A DNA stretch of 61,200 bases, the filler included, from Platydemus manokwari (lineage: Eukaryota): NCBI GenBank assembly GCA_037951405.1. It is 5 parts of 5 records of this genome, joined end to end, with 100 filler letters (N's around TTAATTAATTAA, not from the genome) between each part and the next. Parts side by side here need not be neighbours in the genome. Positions count along the whole stretch, not along the records: positions 50,191 to 61,200 come from JBBMOY010982195.1; 4 more parts are not named here. One strand, given 5' to 3'. Of the stretch, positions 50,191 to 61,200 are shown piece after piece (the first letter of the stretch is position 1; every line of letters starts with the position of its first letter). A program made the position numbers and the translations under genes. The notes under the pieces are model-generated. The model ran no database searches and was not told where the DNA came from. It saw nothing but the letters and a program-made list of their open reading frames with translations.

Positions 50191-50894
50191 TAATGATTTG
50201 CTACAGCACACACACAAGTGTTTACATCTGGTGTCAAATTCCGGTTATTAAGTTATAGACCCAATAGAAACAACTAGATAAAATCTCGAAAGATGAAACC
50301 ATATTTGTTACGAATTACTGATGATAACAAGTGAATTACATTCAAGAAATACCAAATAAGAATTAGTGTAAATGGTAATATTAAAGATTAAATGTTTCGC
50401 CATTCAAATTAGAAGAGATCAAAGAAGGTAAGAATTATTTTTATAAATTCGTGAAACATAATTTATGTGCTCAGTTAACCGGATAGGTTTGAAATGCGAT
50501 ACGGTAGTGTACTGAACTTAAGTTATGATAATACAGTAAATAATTTTGAAAATAATTTTGAAAATTGAACTTATTTTATTAACGTTATAAATTTTTAGTG
50601 TATTTTTTTAAAAAGTTTGGTAAAGTTACAAACAAAACTTTTTAATAATTAAAACATATTTTTCATTTTGTTAGCTTGGACCTTAATAAGAATTCTGAGG
50701 ATTTTTACATGGGGATGATTATTTAAATAAAATTCCATTTTATATAGAAATATTCGTTTATGTGTGTTTTGTTAAAGAAAGAAACCAGATCGAATGTTTA
50801 AATAATATGAACACAACCTTAAGAAAATATATTTAATTTATCAAAACTCAGGTTTGCAATCAGGTTTATAAGTGATAATACATTTAGTTGTTTA

Positions 50895-51384
50895 GACTTA
50901 AGTTAAGAAAAAAGGTCCTTTGACCTACTTGCGTTATAATAAATTTTCGCCCATGTGATAATTTTATAATTTAATATCACATATAACTGCTGTGTTTGAT
51001 TTATTCGTATAATTCAGTTAATATCCCATTTTTTAAAATGTCTAATAATGACAAAACATAGCTTTAAAACTAAGTTCCCATCCTAATCACAACACTTCTA
51101 TATGATTATTTAAGTTTTTAAAATTAAATTTTTATAATTATAAACCGAGTTAGTTAATTACAGACATGTTTAGTAATATCATTGCTTATTTTTATAAAAT
51201 AATTGTAAAAATTAAGACTATCTATCGATTTGCTTCTAATGTTTAAAAAGAGGTCCTCGCTAATTTTCAATAAATAATTTTCAAAATGTTTTTAAAGAAT
51301 ATAATTAAATAAACTATATAGATTTTTGCAATGAACTCAACAAATTTAAAATTTTATTTTAGGATTCTATTTTTAACTTTAGCT
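50895..51384. mobile_element. Non-autonomous Merlin element (same family as 23047-23702)
   Basis: Colinear with 23047-23702 (shared cacaacacttctatatgattatt, attgcttatttttataaa, taattaaataaactatatagatttttgcaat). TIRs are gacttaagttaagaaaaaaggtcc and ggattctatttttaactttagct. No TSD was recognisable. Confidence 0.85.
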
Positions 51385-53059
51385 TAATTTTAATTTCAAA
51401 CCTTTAATAGAATTACGTAACTGTTATGGTTTATGATAAACTTAAATCAACACAAAATTAATATTTTTAATAATTTGATTACATGTAATTTTAAAAGTTC
51501 ATTAGGATATTTACAAAAAAACTAAAATTACTAATAACCAGTTCAAGCCTTAGCAAATTTTATTGATATGAATTTCAAATTTATGAGAATGACATTTCAG
51601 AAGCCAACCAAAATTATCATATTATTAAATTTGATAAAAACATGTTGAATAAACGAAACAGATTTGACAAAGGCAAAATATACAGATTATTTATCGTAAT
51701 AATATATACTTAAAATAATATACTTTTATTTTCTTCGAAATCTTTTGAAAACATTTCCTATATTTAAGACTTCGACAGGTGTGAGAGGTATTTATGATAT
51801 TAAACTTATTGAAAACTTGTTCTTACAGATGAATTCTTAGCTACAGAAATAAGAAATCTCCTCTAAAAAGACTCCATGATAAGTTATTTATATTAAAAGA
51901 GATAAAGGCAAATGCTCATTTACGAATCATACTCTAATCTGAAGTGAAAAGAAAGATTTTAAATTTCGACCAGAACATGGTACAAATTAGTATAATGGAC
52001 CTCACATTTATTTATAAATGATACTTTAACTTAAAGGATATCACGTGGAGAAATGATTTTATATTTCGACTAGAATTTGGTACAAATTGGAATCTCGAAA
52101 CTTAATTTACAAACCAAATTCCAGAGATTCAAAATCTCATATTCAATGAGTTTTATATAAAATATCAATCAACCATGATCATTTGATAAAATAATGTGTC
52201 GGAGATTTATGAAACTTTTAACTAAATTTGTTGCAACGGTGTGATCATTTGGTGGAGTACTATCTGATTTATGAAAAAATCTATTCTCATATATTTCAAT
52301 AAAATTACTGAGTTAATTGGTTTGTTCTTTATTGATAAGTTTCGGAGGGTTGAATTTAAATTCACATCAGCTATTTCCAACATCATAACAATAAATCGAA
52401 GGCACTCCAACATGTTTTGTTAATTTCATAATTAAATTAAAAAGCAAGTCGAGATCAGCACCCAAAAGATAAACGACAAAACAGAAGACAACAACAAAGG
52501 GTGGTAGTCAAAAAAATCATGTTAAAGTCACACAGAATAAAATAATCATGCTAAAAGAATGATAGATGGACGCGAAACGTAACTCCATTTATAATCTGAT
52601 CGTGTGTGTTCACTTGATGTCTCACGGATTCACTTTCATTTGATAGAATCCTTCACTTGTAGCTCTTTTAACAAAATTTCTTGTATCTCTCGTGCGATTG
52701 GCACATGCCGATGTATGCTTGCCCCAGTTGACTATTAAATTTTAAATATGGATTGATATATAAGAATCATGCGAGAGGCAGTCGACACGTGTACTTATAT
52801 AAGAATAATATGAAATGATTTTGCAAATGTCAGCCAATGTTATACACTGACATTCATTAAATGCTAGCGTGACTTTGGATGTTAGCTGAGTGCAGTGCAG
52901 ACGACTTATTGACAAAGTTAAACTGGTTAATTAAACAGAGTAAATTGAAGAAAATCAATAAAAATTTCAAGGTTGATTTGAAAACGTTATGTCTAAAAAT
53001 CTAAATAGTTTTACATAAATTATTTACGGAAAATTGAATATTTACTCGATGATTTATTG

Positions 53060-53770
53060 ATTTATTATCAAGGCAACAAAATAAATAAATTATTATTCCT
53101 TTTATTTTATAATATAAATAATATTATTAATAATAATAATAATATGAATAATAATAGTAATCAAATTCTTATAATAAATAAACAAACAACTAACATTAAA
53201 TAATAAACAATACAATAACAAAAACAAATAAACAATATTTGAAGACGATTTCAGATAAAACAAATACTAAAAAACAATAAATAAAAATATTATAATAAAC
53301 AATTCTATCATCACAACAACAATCCACAATTGATTAAATAAATAAACAAATTAAATAAACAATGATAAACAATTACTTATATAGTAAATAATAAACAATT
53401 GGACAATAATAAACAAAAATAGTAAACAATTGTCGATAAATAAACAAATATCTCAAATCGAAATTCCAACAAAAATAAACAAACAATAATAAACATGTAT
53501 TAATATTAATAAATAAACATTTCAAAAAGAATCGATAAACAATTATTAATATAATAAACAATGTTAATAATAAATATATATAATTAATATAAATAATAAC
53601 ATTGAAATCTCAATTGAATAAACAAAAAAATAACAAAAAAAATAATAAACAATTAAATTAAAGATTTTAATATAATAATAAATGTGATAAAAATAGCAAA
53701 GGATTACCAATAAAATAAATAATAAACAATTTAAGAGAAACAATAATAAAAAATCAATAAAAAACAAACA
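53060..53770. repeat. Low-complexity AATAAAC-rich tract in a Rab3GAP1 intron
   Basis: About 19 TAAACA hexamers by manual count. The + strand is A-rich and nearly free of G. Confidence 0.85.
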
Positions 53771-53776
53771 AATTAC

Positions 53777-54720
53777 CAATTTCTCCTGGAAAACTCGTCG
53801 AATACCAGACAAGTTTAGACATTGCTTGGGTGTATATTTGATTGTTGCACAATGCAATTTGCTTTTGAAATCATTTTCAAATTGAATCCCAATATAGAGC
53901 GGCCAATTTTTCGGGCCATATTTCACGAGAATGGGTAAATAGCTGAATGACAAACATGATCAATAGAAATAACAAATAAATAACACAATTTATTATTCAC
54001 CATTTTACATTGATAGCTGCCATTGTGAGCGAACTGATCAATTGATTGATTTGATCTTGACCATAAATTGATGTGCTTTTCGATGGAGAAAAAACAATAA
54101 ATTTCCTTCTTCCAAACCTGAACAATGATTGTGATCAGAACATATTGCTAATCACAAATGAACCATTTAACAAGCTCCCAATGAATATCGTTCTCACAGA
54201 CGTTTCCAATCAACCTGTTTTCATTCATTACTAATGATTCGGCAACTGAAATTGAGAAAATGTGGTTTAAAAACTTCTCCCATTCAAATAAGAATATTGA
54301 TATAAAATTAATGTAAATCTTATAAGTACTTTCGATGGTATTCGATTCAGTATTGGAGTTTTCAGGATTATCAATTTTTGTAATATTTGGTTGAAATAAT
54401 GTTATATTTAATTCAAATTTTTGGAAAATAATTTTCCCCATATCTTTTTGATTATCATTCTAATAATTGTAGCTTACTAATTCCTATAAAACATTTACGA
54501 ATTTACTTCAATCATTTGCAAATTTTCTATGGACGTTATTATATCTTCAACTCTTGATATGAATCTAACAAAAATAGAAAAAGTTACGAAAAATTGTAAT
54601 TATTAAATAAACTTTTCCCATTCGGTAACATTTGTATAATCGGTAATTTCAAAAAGTTCAGATTCCTTTAAAAATTGCTATCAAATAATTTATTAATTAA
54701 CATCTTACTTCAATTTCCAT
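53777..54720 (-). CDS. RAB3GAP1: Rab3 GTPase-activating protein catalytic subunit, 5' part. Exons 54720-54709, 54665-54613, 54564-54507, 54459-54330, 54245-54164, 54117-54001, 53942-53777
   Basis: Spliced product MEIEESELFEITDYTNVTEWEKFISRVEDII...ELVKWFGRRKFIVFSP...QINQLISSLTMAAINVKCYLPILVK...KYTPKQCLNLSGIRRVFQEKL matches Rab3GAP1 motifs (FEITDFTTASEWERFISKVEE; LVRWYGLREFVVIAP; LLSS.SIA..N.GC.VP; HLSGLLDIFKSK). All introns are GT-AG and phase-consistent. Downstream exons were not identified. Confidence 0.9.
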
Positions 54721-56428
54721 TAAATAAACTTCTTATTAAGTTAAAATTAAAATCCTAATATTGATTAAATTGCCACCTCAAATTAAATTATTTAAACACG
54801 GGTAAAGGCTACTGACAAATTATTATTCTGATGTTTTAATTTTTTTAAACAATCCGATATTTATATGATTTTTTAATAAAAAAATTCTTAATTACTGCGA
54901 ATAGAAAAAATGATTCTATAAATAATCCGTTACAGCAATCAGATATTCCCCTGATGCGAATTGTTGATCAACAAAATATTCAAATATTTATTTTAATTGG
55001 CTTAATTTAGTTTGATTTTGACAAACACTAATATTTTATAGGTATTATTATGATTCAATGTTAATCATGTATAAGGAAAATGTATAATTATTATAATGTA
55101 GAATAATGCGATTTTATTAAAGGACAGAAAGTGATTAATGAATTGAAGAGAAATTTTCACCAACAATAAACGTGCAGAATTTTAAATGTAATTATAATGT
55201 AAATTTTCGTAAATTTTTCGTCTTCACACGATTGAGGAGAAGAAAGAACAAAACATAAGATTAATCGCTACATGTATGTCATTAGAACTCGTGAGACTCA
55301 TATAATTTGTGGATAATATTGAGAAAAAGATAGAAAAATCAATTAAATAGACATTCAAGTAAATTTCGGTTAAAAAAGACACAAAAAGTAACAGATTTAT
55401 GGGTACCAAATCCTAACAGAAGTATACCGGAATAGATTAAATGTTGGATCACAATATGCAAGATAAATGGTCAATACAAAATTAATGCGCAAAGTTTATT
55501 TTACAGTCTATTAAGAGGGGTACTTATTACTATTGTCTTAAGGATTTTTCACACACATCCTAGAATCCATGTAGTTTGATTTCTAATTTGTAAAGCTATA
55601 TTTTATTATGTTATTATTTGTCCTTATTTATATTCTAAGTTTAACTATGTATTATAGTTCCAACAGTAACCAACCTCATTAAAGAATAAGTTGTAGAAAT
55701 AGGAGACATCAAAACATTGCTAGAAGTTCATTTAGAATAATTGTTATTCAGTAACAATATTAATTTCTAATTTTTGTGTGATATTTTGCTTGAAATCTCC
55801 TTGTGTTTTTCTATTTATTAACTTAAAGTTTCTAAAGCTTTTTTATAGTTAAAATTACTTATTACTACGTAAAGCCTTTCTAATAAGTCAGATCTTAGTA
55901 AATTTCTTACAAATCAGTGGAATATTTAAACATTAATCCTGCTATTCCAAGAGTGTGCTGTACTGTCGACTGTTCTGGCCTTCAAACAATTAATGAATAC
56001 TGACGAGTTTTTATTAATTTTCTACATTAATAATTCCTTTTATCTATATCTATATTTAATGTAATATAGCTACTTACTCGTATTTACCACTAACAAAAAT
56101 CTTTTCAACTATTTTCTTACACTGATGTTTGTATCATTTACTTTATTTTTTGGAAAAGAATTTTCTAATGACAAAACAAATTTGAAATAAAGTTATTACT
56201 TTAATAATCTTTCTAAATAAATTCCGATAAAGAAACACATAAGGAACCGAATGTTTGTAAATACTCATAAATCATCATATATATCTTATTGTTAAGAGAA
56301 TTAATAAACTTATGATAAGAAAGATTATGGAAAGTGATTTGAAAGCTTGAATATGAATATCTTTAATAAATCAATTAATCGAACAATAATTAATCGAAGG
56401 ACCTAGAAACCAGAACTATTATTTCATA

Positions 56429-57961
56429 ATGGTTAGAATTTTGCTAAACTTTTGTTAAATAAATTTTGTTAAATAGGGAGGCGGTCTTCAAGAAGTAATC
56501 GTTATCCATATTGGTCAAGCAGGTTGTCAAGTTGGTAATGCTTGTTGGGAATTGTTTTGCATTGAGCACGGTATTGGACCAGATGGATTAGCGAGATATT
56601 CTTCAATGTCAGACACTTCCTTCAAAACGTTTTTTAATGAAACCGGAGCCGGAAAATTTGTTCCCCGTTGTGCATTTATTGATTTAGAACCTACACCAAT
56701 AGGTAAAGATTTGTAAAATTGTATAAAATTATTAAGAAATTAATTACATTTAATATTGATGACAAACTCATGTTTATAATTTGTATAAAATAATAATAAA
56801 ATTATAATAAAATAATATATTATAATGATTATATTAAAAAATTCCAAACTTTTAGATGAAATCCGTACTGGAGTATATCGTCTTTTGTTTCATCCAGAAC
56901 AATTAATGTCGGGAAAAGAAGATGCAGCTAATAATTATGCTCGGGGATATTTTACAATTGGGCAAATGATGATTGACCTATGTTTAGATCGTGTGAGGAA
57001 ACTGGCCGATGAGTGTCGAATGCTTCAAGGATTTTTTATTTTCCATTCCTTTGGTGGTGGTACAGGATCTGGATTTACGGCTTTAATGATTCAAAGAATA
57101 AGCCAGGATTATGGAAAAAAACCGAAAATTGAATTATGTGTATATCCAGCCCCTTGTTTGTCGACAGCAGTAGTAGAACCATACAATTCAATATTAACTA
57201 CTCATGCTTGCATTGAAGATTCCGATGTCACTTTTCTCATGGATAATGAGGCTGTGTGGGATATATGCATCCGAAATTTAAATATTCAAAGACCATCATA
57301 TACAAATATTAATAGAATTCTAGCTCAGATTATCAGTGCTATAACTGCTTCTCTGAGATTTGAAGGATCTCTCACTGGTGATTTGATATCATTACAAACT
57401 AATCTTGTTCCTTATCCAAGAATCCATTTTCCATTAATAACATTTAATCCCATAATATCAGCAGAAAAAGCATATCATGAAACGCTATCTACAGAACAAA
57501 TTACTCGATCATGTTTCGAACCAGCGAATAGTTTTGTCAAAGTTGACCCACGAAGAGGTAAATACATGACAGTATGTATGCTTTATAGAGGGGACGTTGA
57601 TCCTAACGCATCAAATACAGCAATTTCAAATATTAAGAGAACTCGAACAATTCAATGGGTTGATTGGTGTCCCACAGGTTTTAAAGTTGATATAAATCAC
57701 CAACCACCTGCTGCAGTACCAGGAGGTGATTTGGCAAAAGTCATGAGATCTTGTTGTATGCTTGCAAACACTACAGCAATAAGAGAAGCTTGGGCTAGAC
57801 TGGATAGAAAATTTGATTTAATGTTCTCAAAAAGAGCTTTTGTTCATTGGTATGTTGGTGAAGGAATGGAAGAAAATCAATTTATTGAAGCTAGAGAAGA
57901 TTTGGCTAGTTTAGAAAAAGATTACGAAGAAGTTGGTTTCGATTCTAAAATGAAAGGCTGA
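56429..57961 (+). CDS. TUBA: Highly divergent alpha-tubulin, 444 aa; exons 56429-56431, 56477-56702, 56856-57961
   Basis: ATG|gttaga...aatag|GGA GGC GGT CTT CAA GAA gives [33 protein letters not shown]. It has GGGTGSG, alpha-type [11 protein letters not shown] and [12 protein letters not shown]. It has the same two intron positions as the other alpha-tubulin, no stops or frameshifts, and AATAAA at ~58061. Confidence 0.96.
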
Positions 57962-60199
57962 GAAAAATTAAACTTCCTACAGAGAATAAGTTATCATCTT
58001 TTATTTTCAATTCTTTTACCAAATCAGATTGTATCATGAACACATTTATTTGGTCCAAAAAATAAATTGAACAAGAACAATAATGTTTTTACTTCTTCTA
58101 AAACAAATATTAATAACAATAGTAATAATGTGCAATTATAACTATAAAACGATGAACAATATTATATATAATCGGTTAATAGTAATTACTAATAACTTGT
58201 GAACTTATAATAATCTAAGTTTTGAATATCGAAAGAGCACTTGCAGTAAATATCCAACTAATGATAGTCTTTGTATCTCCATTCGGCGTCCAAGTGAACA
58301 TTCTTAGCAGAAATCAAAATTAGTTATTTCTGCCTCAATTATTATAAAATTATTATGTCCTTTCAATTACACACGCTATATATATTGTCGGGTACTTAAC
58401 ATAAATTTTCATAATATTTATAATTTCATTTCTCGACAAAAATAAATTTAATTCAAAAATAGAATAAAAGAAATATATAAATAGAAAGAAGGAACACTAG
58501 TAACTAAAAATCGTAATCATCAAAAATATATCAATAAAAATAGTATAAAATAAAACTGCAAATGATAATGTAAAATATATAGTGAAAGTAAAACTGGTAT
58601 AAATTAAAAACAACAATCTAAAAATCCCCCGAAAAACAAAAATCAAATTATCGCTCAATAATTATTTAAGTCAAACGAAGACAGATAATTAGCGAAATCT
58701 TTTATCAACGGAATAACTAATCAATCTTCAAAGAAACAATTATCTTTATCGAACGAGTTGAATATGTATATGTTGGGCAGGTAATGTTTGGTTTTACATG
58801 ATTTAAGACTTGATGTGACTAGAAATAAGAAAAGTTTAGAATCAGATGATAATTAAATATTAAAACCTTAAGAGCCGTTGAGCTCTGTTAATTAAAATTT
58901 GTAAAATTTAGCTGGCACACCTGACTCAAAAAGGTGTATATAATTATGAACAATATAGAATCACTTTATAGAATAATAATAGAATAAATAAATCGAACCA
59001 AATAAATTATAATTAAAATGACAATAACTAGGTTAATAATAATAGGTTAATATCGTTCAAATAAAAATATAATGAAATCGTATGATAAAATAATATTATT
59101 ACAATGAAATAGACGAGGGCCTAAGCAAAAAAACAGGTGTGCAATAGTTTTAGGTTTTCAGTTATTGATAGGTTCTATTATGATAAAACTAAAGATTTTT
59201 GTTGACTTCTTGTGGCAATGTCCGTAAGAGCCCTCAAATGATTTTATCGGTAGTTAGGTCTAATGACACAGTAACCACTACTATAGAATTGTTTTGATTT
59301 TATGATTTTAGATTTTTAATTTAGGTTCTAGGTGAATGAGATTCAGACTAGAACTTTCATATTTAAATAAAGATAAAATGTGATTTCAAAATAATTAAAA
59401 TTACTTAATCGGAGATTTTAAAATAATATCCAATTTTATAATAATATGCAATGGTTCTTTTATCGTATGTATTTTTCGAAAGATAATAAGACAAAATAGT
59501 TTTTCGGAGTTGATTAAGAAGATTTTTCAACATTATTCTTCGTAATTTGAGGTGACATAATAGTTTGTCGGATCCGTAGAAATGAATTAGATTGTTTATC
59601 ACAATTAATTAAATGATTTGTAGAAACTATAACGTAGTAATAGGCGACTTATTTTGTTCTTTGTCCTTAAACACTTGCTTCGAATTTTTCGTTTAATTTT
59701 TTACTATTTTATTTTTACTCATTAATTTTTCTGGATGCTATTTTTAGTCAATATTTTATTTAAATTCTAAATTTGAATTTCTTTTATTCTATATATTACG
59801 TTCGAGCCTTATTGATTTTATTGTTTAACTAAGCTTAATCCTATTTGATACCACTACTGTCAGTCAGTCTCTATGAGTTCTTAATTAAGGTTACTGGTGT
59901 AATATACCATATATTGATATTTCTTTACCTCGCACAGCCTTATTGTGTGAAGACAATAGGTGTGGCAGTAGTGATATATTTTAATTAACTTAATTATCAA
60001 TCTTAAAATTATCTAAGCCTACTATTTTTTTAAATTGATTACAAACAATTATTTTACTATCCTTATATGATTAATAACTAAGATTTGACGCTATAAATGT
60101 TTATTAAATATAACACCAATACAAAACTGATTAACAACAATAATAAAATAAAAGTTACAGATTGATTTTGAAACTACCCTATACACTTAATAAAAAAAA

Positions 60200-60630
60200 A
60201 GGTACAAGACTACCTTACAATTTCAGAGAAAAAGACGGTTAATACATCCGACTCTAGGGGTAAAACCAGGTTACCTTTCTTCAGAGTGTTTTGTGAACAA
60301 GGCTCTATAATAAGAAATATAACGATACGAAATATAATATAAATCAGTATTTTACAGGTATGGGTCTTAATTTGGGTCTTCCAGTAAAATACCGGGCATA
60401 TATGGGAATATTTGTCTTATGCACCAGATGATCTTCTACTGTGCTTCGAATTGAAATTTAAATGTGTCTTCTTCAATTGATGTAACGTACAACGTCGTCT
60501 TAGCAAATAGGAAATTGTGGACAGTGAAATTAAAATAATGGCCGTGTTGATTGCCTTATATAGACAGTGTGAATCACTCGCAGATATTCTCTGCGATTAA
60601 ATCTAATGCCAGGGAATTTTATTTTATCGA
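60200..60630 (-). mobile_element. Decayed L1/Tx1-like reverse transcriptase remnant
   Basis: Minus-strand fragments KFPGI/DLIAE (domain 0), YFTGRPKLRPIPVK, LIIEP and SDVLTVF (YADD-like) occur in RT order. It is related to 35996-36030. Confidence 0.45.
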
Positions 60631-61200
60631 TAGAATTTATTCAATAGTGAGAGAAATCCTCTCTGAATAAATTTTTTAGTCAGACAAAATATCTCTAGAT
60701 TAAATTTAATGGAGTGACTATTTTATTCTGTGACAGAATTTTCATGCACGAAAATAGATGACAATTTATTTGTCGCTGTTAATGGGTGATATCTTATTGC
60801 GTATTGATATTTTATAAATTAATTTATTATTTTAGGGAATTTCGACGGGTTTATTATTGGTAGTTTTATTGATATTATTATTTTACGGATATATAAATAA
60901 TAAATATTATAAATATCAATATTCTTAACTGGTCTTTCCTCGGAAATTTCAAAGTGTCAAAATATAAAAAAACACATTGTGTTGGGTTGTGGTAAGATGT
61001 TATGTTTTGTTGTTTGTTATATTACAACTCAACAGCGTGAGTTCGTTACTATTTTACGAATTTGTTTCAACAAGAATAATATCAACAAAGAGAAATTTTA
61101 TTATCAAAAATTTATTTGAAATCACAACGTACAAACACTCAAGTTAACTCAATCGAGATTTTACAAGAAAAACAAATTAACTATGGTAATCTCACCGAGA

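Follow-up and report, generated by a model that had tools for sequence, protein, structure and literature searches.

A flatworm alpha-tubulin under strong purifying selection with serine at the catalytic Glu254 position: a candidate GTPase-activation-deficient isotype

Introduction

In alpha-tubulin, Glu254 acts together with Asp251 to complete the exchangeable nucleotide site (E-site) of beta-tubulin in the adjoining dimer (PMC7018511, PMC8764682, PMC11893814). Here we analyse an alpha-tubulin gene of the flatworm Platydemus manokwari (assembly GCA_037951405.1) in which this position is occupied by serine. The gene lies on the plus strand of the part derived from record JBBMOY010982195.1, which makes up positions 50191–61200 of a stretch of 61,200 nucleotides composed of five joined parts (the window; all coordinates count along it). 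It comprises three exons encoding 444 amino acids, the first exon being predicted. An earlier reading of the same DNA, made without database searches and referred to below as the sequence-only reading, had proposed it as a natural isotype that is dead for hydrolysis of guanosine triphosphate (GTP).

The closest engineered systems are mutants of human TUBA1B. Tubulins carrying E254A, E254N or E254Q polymerise, keep their GTP, show no catastrophe and bind end-binding (EB) proteins along the lattice (PMC7018511, PMC8764682, PMC11893814). Nucleation by E254A tubulin is extremely efficient (PMC7018511), and hydrolysis is slowed in the E254D form (PMC7018511, PMC11893814). The position altered is the same as in the flatworm gene, and the A, N and Q forms lose the carboxylate as Ser254 does. 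The expectation of GTP-filled, stable, EB-decorated and strongly nucleating lattices has its experimental footing in these mutants. They are otherwise canonical alpha-tubulins, whereas the window protein has approximately 28% other differences, including N249T, R2Q and loss of the tail.

Among natural proteins, the nearest described analogues in proposed function are the alpha3-tubulins of coccidian parasites. Toxoplasma gondii alpha3-tubulin (TGME49_231400) and its orthologues in Hammondia, Neospora, Besnoitia and Cystoisospora have threonine at 251 and glutamine or histidine at 254, MPREI in place of MREI, and a very long tail; they are absent from the proliferating stage, not being expressed in tachyzoites, and the authors of the study proposed reduced or absent GTPase-activating protein (GAP) activity with stable, non-dynamic polymers, or else decay (PMC10056924). 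In both the coccidian and the flatworm proteins Glu254 is lost, the N-terminal MRE is disturbed and the C-terminus is non-standard. However, alpha3 lacks Asp251 and has a very long tail, whereas the window gene keeps Asp251 and has no tail; and the coccidian genes are protist genes, while the flatworm gene shows clear purifying selection. The flatworm loss of Glu254 appears to be of independent origin, because the window gene nests inside the animal and flatworm alpha-tubulins, the coccidian sequences being outside the alignment.

A related arrangement exists in every normal dimer. At the intradimer, non-exchangeable site (N-site), beta-tubulin has a non-acidic T7/H8 residue, Lys254, which leaves the GTP below it permanently unhydrolysed. 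This is the normal intradimer design, and the window case would apply the same logic at the interdimer interface; beta-tubulin keeps N249, whereas the window protein has lost it. A limited literature search for natural isotypes without Glu254 found no description of a metazoan alpha-tubulin that lacks it.

Loss of Glu254 and of neighbouring catalytic residues

The catalytic region of the gene contains the following features.

57356–57403, plus strand: T7 loop/H8 motif, residues 243–258 (AGA TTT GAA GGA TCT CTC ACT GGT GAT TTG ATA TCA TTA CAA ACT AAT)
57374–57376, plus strand: Thr (ACT) at the position of the invariant Asn249, from the alignment
57389–57391, plus strand: Ser (TCA) at the position of the catalytic Glu254, from the gap-free alignment; the codon is identical in the relative described below

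The exon-3 product was compared with all PDB chains using phmmer. It matches alpha-tubulins only (E 3e-187, approximately 72% identity), and the alignment has no gaps over 360 residues (query 1–360 against chain 80–439), which places the serine exactly at canonical position 254. The serine codon reported in the sequence-only reading is borne out by the sequence, by this alignment, by a contig of the source run at 15× and by a contig from a related species (L001). The other substitutions that it listed are likewise present: D245E, A247S, N249T, V250G, T253I and F255L around E254S, with DPNAS for VPKDV and KVDIN for KVGIN further downstream. The comparisons made here are with proteins other than the second alpha-tubulin of the window, on which the sequence-only reading drew and which falls outside 50191–61200. 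The combination N249-D251-E254 is found in 216 of 218 T7/H8 motifs, taken from 212 retrieved alpha-tubulins. The exceptions are two proteins, P0002, which is the close relative of the window protein, and P0201.

To place these changes in context, residues were scored at the 260 sites where 44 ordinary alpha-tubulins are conserved to 95% or more. Of the 34 differences that the window protein shows there, ten are unique to its lineage: R2Q, V74P, L153M, S237A, N249T, E254S, F255L, V328S, F343W and A427S. Three of the ten fall within the six conserved sites of residues 249–255 (hypergeometric p = 8e-4). V328S and F343W are in H10 and the H10–S9 loop, which we take to belong to the same minus-end-facing surface as T7/H8. 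All 20 of the N-site GTP-contact positions checked, which are those of a 1JFF-type structure, are canonical. The M-loop region and H11–H12 are 78–86% identical to the consensus, while H10 is only 47% identical.

A quantum mechanics/molecular mechanics study gives R2, D251, E254 and K352 as the alpha-tubulin residues of the beta-tubulin E-site active site (PMC10319017). In the window protein R2 and E254 are replaced (R2Q and E254S), while the other two, D251 and K352, are retained. The proposal of a natural hydrolysis-dead isotype is strengthened by N249T, F255L and R2Q at the same site, and as judged from the sequence the finding is more coherent than the sequence-only reading held, with three catalytic-site residues lost in a strongly constrained gene. 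It is also less unprecedented than had been claimed, given the precedent of coccidian alpha3.

Codon logic suggests a route to serine. A Glu codon GAA can become TCA in two steps without a stop codon only by way of GCA (Ala), and E254S would therefore have arisen most simply through an alanine intermediate.

The second exceptional motif belongs to an alpha-tubulin-like open reading frame (ORF), P0201, at L002:3001–3957 (contig ctg320654 of ENA ERZ25072999, 885 kb), with LRFDGSLNADLTQFHTN and E254Q. It has further changes at conserved sites (e.g. KGAFVHW, NKQPP, IFRQKL), its C-terminus runs into non-tubulin sequence, and tubulin-domain fragments adjoin the ORF. The impression is of a eukaryotic paralogue that is decaying or has been badly called.

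Evidence for an intact and constrained gene

P0002 is the sole close relative in a collection of 5.8 billion proteins. It is 96% identical to the window protein and has the identical 16-residue T7/H8 motif. It is encoded on L001, a genomic Logan contig of 1281 nt that stems from another sample and with which the window gene shares 89% DNA identity. The two genes were compared over 367 codons by Nei-Gojobori counting. There are approximately 168 synonymous and 24 non-synonymous differences, with 14 amino-acid differences, giving a dN of 0.029, a dS of about 2.0 (saturated) and a dN/dS of 0.014. Within the 16 codons of the T7/H8 motif there are nine silent codon differences and no replacements, and codon 254 is TCA in both species. 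An orthologue thus keeps Ser254 under strong purifying selection.

The non-coding parts of the gene behave differently from one another. Both species have an intact acceptor for intron 2, and the intron sequence is not conserved (47 matches, compared with 44.6 ± 2.5 for shuffles). The 3′ untranslated region (UTR), by comparison of 57962–58071 with L001:1176–1281, has 79 matches over 110/106 nt (approximately 72% identity); shuffles have a mean of 62 and a standard deviation of 3.3, none of 500 reaches 79, and z is about 5. The conserved region includes an AATAAA 100 nt past the stop codon. Conservation of this UTR at saturated dS may be a sign of control elements, beyond AATAAA, that act post-transcriptionally.

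The codon in question was also compared with the source run, X1. A Logan contig of 1610 nt with a k-mer depth of 15 covers 56400–57859 with zero differences. Taken together, the dN/dS of 0.014, the shared Ser codon, the conserved 3′ UTR and the 15× contig exclude a pseudogene, neutral drift and an assembly error. Sequence comparison thus confirms the window gene as a real, intact alpha-tubulin under very strong purifying selection.

P0002 was the sole hit at more than 80% identity in searches with exon 3 and with the motif region (residues 140–200). The exon-2 peptide, used as a query, retrieved no orthologous fragment, its best hit being at 71%, so that a single species is known to have R2Q and the N-terminal extension.

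It is worth adding that over a conserved stretch of the gene, 57825–57881, the summed contig depth in X1 is approximately 1000, compared with 15 elsewhere. The X1 contigs branch there into other sequences, one of which continues GGAGAATTTAATGAAGCTAGGGATGAAATT (GEFNEARDEI). The branching shows that the sample contains several further tubulin paralogues, one or more of them divergent as well.

Gene structure and surroundings

The remaining features of the gene are as follows.

56429–56431, plus strand: predicted start codon ATG; the coding part of exon 1 is the ATG only, with GT directly after it (ATG/GTTAGA)
56432–56476, plus strand: predicted intron 1, 45 nt, GT..AG, with a GCTAAC branch-like site, read from the sequence
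56477–56702, plus strand: exon 2, ending IDLEPTPI (translation; Pfam Tubulin, E 3e-17; alignment)
56703–56855, plus strand: intron 2, 153 nt, phase 1, G/GTAAAG...TTTTAG/AT, at the conserved codon 76, with a matching acceptor CTTCAG/AT in L001
56856–57961, plus strand: exon 3, residues 76–443 in canonical numbering, with the stop codon TGA at 57959–57961 (ORF; Pfam Tubulin and Tubulin_C; gap-free PDB match)
57053–57073, plus strand: GGGTGSG signature (T4 loop, residues 142–148), from the sequence
57962–58071, plus strand: 3′ UTR, conserved by comparison with L001, in which AATAAA at 58061–58066 is a candidate polyadenylation signal

Predicted intron 1 is at the conserved, classical intron-1 site of metazoan alpha-tubulins. 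An in-frame stop TAG at 56474–56476 closes the exon-2 frame upstream, so that the start must come via splicing and not from within that frame. Flatworms carry out trans-splicing, and we assume that an AUG donated by a spliced leader at the acceptor 56476/56477 would yield an identical protein.

The exon-2 product has an N-terminal extension and begins (M)GGGLQEV in place of the MRE(C/I) motif, with Gln (CAA, 56489–56491) at the position of Arg2. Its H1–S2 loop is three residues shorter than usual and lacks K40, there being no lysine in the shortened loop before K50. At the other end, the protein has no acidic tail and no terminal tyrosine.

The identity of the gene is clear. Pfam gives PF00091 with E 2e-36 for exon 3 and 3e-17 for exon 2, and PF03953 with E 1e-42, and in the tree the gene is nested among alpha-tubulins. 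The points at which it departs from an alpha-tubulin are the T7/H8 triad (T249, D251, S254), the MRE N-terminus, the acidic tail with its tyrosine, and K40. The description of an otherwise clean gene holds up, the frame being open to the TGA, intron 2 being at its conserved position and GGGTGSG being present; the absence of an acidic tail and of K40, and the altered N-terminus, had gone unremarked.

The gene is the single recognisable one within 50191–61200, where no tRNA, Rfam family or other convincing ORF was found, and it is surrounded by AT-rich DNA with no other gene beside it. Approximately 3 kb upstream, 53009–53609 is a low-complexity, strand-skewed and very AT-rich stretch (GC 0.12–0.15, AT skew 0.38), in which no ORF, tRNA or Rfam match was found.

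A tail-less clade of flatworm alpha-tubulins

The motif-region search retrieved a set of flatworm proteins of 439–445 residues. They comprise 13 neodermatan sequences, from Clonorchis, Fasciola, Paragonimus, Heterobilharzia, Protopolystoma, Echinococcus, Hymenolepis, Schistocephalus and Dibothriocephalus. All end a few residues past EEVG, with no acidic tail, no terminal tyrosine and no K40, and have an extended N-terminus. At the 95%-conserved sites defined above, residues derived in this clade include G250, D354 (in KVDIN), S301/F302, A379, Y107, Ile or Val at 305 and 315, and loss of D327, every one of which is carried by the window protein. The clade, like the window protein, also has S247 and, in the alignment, DVDP at 322–325 (DVDPx, 322–326).

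In a careful IQ-TREE analysis the window gene groups with P0002 (100/99) as sister to the 13 neodermatan sequences (100/99), and the joint tail-less clade has support of 100/100; a quick tree agrees. The claim of a flatworm-type lineage is thus upheld by the tree. According to the tubulin tree alone, the window lineage branches either at the base of the cestodes, trematodes and polyopisthocotylean monogeneans that were sampled or outside them.

Identity between the window protein and the neodermatan clade members is only 68–73%. These include the putative Fasciola hepatica alpha-tub5 (THD22970.1, P0095), Clonorchis P0103, Echinococcus multilocularis CDS43472.1 (P0137), Hymenolepis P0139 and Protopolystoma P0127. 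All 13 neodermatan members retain R2, N249, D251, E254 and F255, while the window lineage has Q2, T249, S254 and L255. Conversely, the window lineage has the canonical FHSFGGG and DYGKK where the neodermatan copies have FHSLGGG and DYRKK.

This distribution bears on the two further altered stretches of the gene.

57599–57613, plus strand: DPNAS for VPKDV, residues 324–328, at the start of H10; V328S alone is unique to the lineage and the rest is clade-wide
57683–57697, plus strand: KVDIN (S9), with K352 kept; G354D is common to the whole tail-less clade, from the alignment

The sequence-only reading had treated such interface changes as companions of E254S. The changes are there, but KVDIN, DVDPx, V250G and A247S are found throughout the clade, in members that keep E254, and hence predate the loss of the glutamate. 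The H10 and S9 changes are therefore ruled out as part of the E254S event.

Two other groups of sequences deserve mention. P0135 from Mytilus californianus (417 aa, annotated as ‘tubulin alpha-2/alpha-4 chain-like’) groups with the tail-less flatworm clade (96/87) and has an acidic tail and canonical catalytic residues. The divergent lineage may be older than the flatworms, or the grouping of P0135 may be a long-branch attraction. Short-tailed alpha-tubulins of 444–446 aa from Logan/JGI (P0131, P0132, P0134, P0136 and P0206) form a tight clade of their own (100/100), with a shortened H1–S2 loop without K40, yet normal N249, D251 and E254 and a terminal tyrosine.

A proposed function, and the alternatives

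On the basis of these observations, we consider that the gene probably encodes a functional flatworm alpha-tubulin isotype that is deficient in GTPase activation and serves stable, non-dynamic arrays. With E254S, N249T and R2Q, the window lineage would have lost residues that activate GTP hydrolysis in the beta-tubulin below, and Ser254, in the company of T249 and Q2, is not expected to serve as a catalytic base. The intact N-site pocket leads one to expect normal folding and pairing with beta-tubulin. The E-site GTP beneath the isotype would then be hydrolysed very slowly or never, and the resulting polymer would be GTP-like, resistant to catastrophe and readily nucleating. Such a subunit would poison dividing cells, and its expression would be confined to post-mitotic, differentiated cells that need permanent arrays.

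A possible site is the cortical and/or axonemal microtubules of sperm, by analogy with a member of the clade in Fasciola. Alpha-tub5 of F. hepatica (D915_005959) is an expressed isotype that has an N-terminal extension and lacks K40, the Glu-Tyr end and E445 (PMC3820024). Spatial transcriptomics finds it, together with alpha-tub4, predominantly in testis (10.1101/2023.12.11.571084). Flatworm sperm contain long parallel rows of cortical microtubules and 9+‘1’ axonemes (e.g. PMC4230190). The testis bias in Fasciola and these sperm arrays together make spermatids the first place to look, and sperm specifically would account for roughly one third of the probability that we attach to the proposed function. 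[quoted passage not shown]

A bolder formulation is put forward only tentatively: that an animal has evolved, and long kept, a dedicated alpha-tubulin by which the beta-tubulin beneath is locked in its GTP state, through the dismantling of E254, N249 and R2. Long retention is indicated by the saturated dS. Without the tail, the terminal tyrosine and K40, the isotype would also be without every major site of the alpha-tubulin ‘code’, and would serve as a natural unit from which to assemble microtubules that are free of modifications and permanently in the GTP state, for example in sperm. It would thereby match, in nature, the engineered E254 mutants. More speculatively, phosphorylation of Ser254 might restore the negative charge and so switch hydrolysis on.

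Several points weigh against the proposed function. The trait is carried by just two sequences, and exon 2, with R2Q, comes from one species. As to transcription, a search of RNA and DNA runs gave one match, X1, which is not recorded as RNA. The testis link comes from a distant relative that retains E254, and THD22970.1 is matched to alpha-tub5 solely through the features published for that isotype. In yeast the E254A mutation is dominant-lethal (cited in PMC7018511), which means that an animal would have to restrict expression in order to tolerate it. The substitutions assayed at 254 in the papers cited here are A, N, Q and D, and serine is not among them. Finally, with D251 and K352 unchanged and the clade-wide D354 two residues from K352, residual or relocated catalysis is possible.

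This last point leads to the strongest alternative, that hydrolysis is slow and not dead: D251, K352 and possibly D354, or a water positioned by Ser254, would sustain a reduced rate that tunes microtubule lifetime. The unchanged D251 and K352 fit such a scheme, D251 being regarded as a second catalytic residue (PMC10319017, PMC10056924), as does the fixation of G354D across the tail-less clade, and E254D tubulin does retain slowed hydrolysis (PMC7018511). However, E254A, E254N and E254Q abolish hydrolysis despite an intact D251 and K352 (PMC7018511, PMC11893814). Moreover, D354 coexists with E254 in all 13 of the other clade members and did not therefore arise as a replacement, and N249 and R2 are lost as well. 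We regard this alternative as unlikely.

More doubtful still is a role outside the lattice, in which an altered minus-end-facing surface (T7/H8, H10 and the N-terminus) no longer makes normal interdimer contacts, and the dimer acts as a minus-end or seed cap, as an adaptor facing gamma-tubulin, or as a partner that sequesters beta-tubulin. The lineage-unique changes do cluster on the minus-end-facing face (N249T, E254S, F255L, V328S, F343W, R2Q), the low conservation of H10 noted above points the same way, and the strong nucleation by E254A tubulin (PMC7018511) would fit a seeding role. On the other hand, most of the changes in H10 and S9 are found across the clade, in proteins whose catalytic residues are intact. 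Conservation of the lateral-contact regions, of the M-loop and of H11–H12, which forms the surface for motors and microtubule-associated proteins, is at the level expected for a lattice subunit, and the engineered E254 mutants polymerise into ordinary lattices.

That this is not a working gene at all, being a decaying duplicate, a sequencing or assembly error at codon 254 or a contaminant, is scarcely credible: the DNA is matched in one run only and exon 1 is a prediction, but the constraint at saturated dS, the identical Ser codon and motif in an independent sample, the open frame and intact splice sites in both species, the conserved 3′ UTR and the variant-free 15× contig all speak against it, and a nucleotide divergence of 11% excludes L001 from being the same individual or strain.

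Implications

Glu254 is treated as an evolutionarily invariant catalytic residue: when it is mutated, GTP hydrolysis and dynamic instability are blocked, and in yeast the change is lethal. If the proposed deficiency in GTPase activation is correct, a strongly constrained metazoan isotype without Glu254 would mean that deliberate use of ‘GTP-locked’ subunits is open to cells. It would also provide a natural reagent for the study of GTP-state lattices, EB binding and nucleation, with no need for engineered mutations. Together with coccidian alpha3, it would suggest convergent evolution of hydrolysis-dead tubulin for stable arrays.

More widely, the gene draws attention to the poorly studied tail-less, K40-less alpha-tubulins of flatworms, which occur in parasites such as Fasciola, relatives of Schistosoma, and Echinococcus. 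This clade may bear on the biology of flatworm sperm and on drugs that target tubulin.

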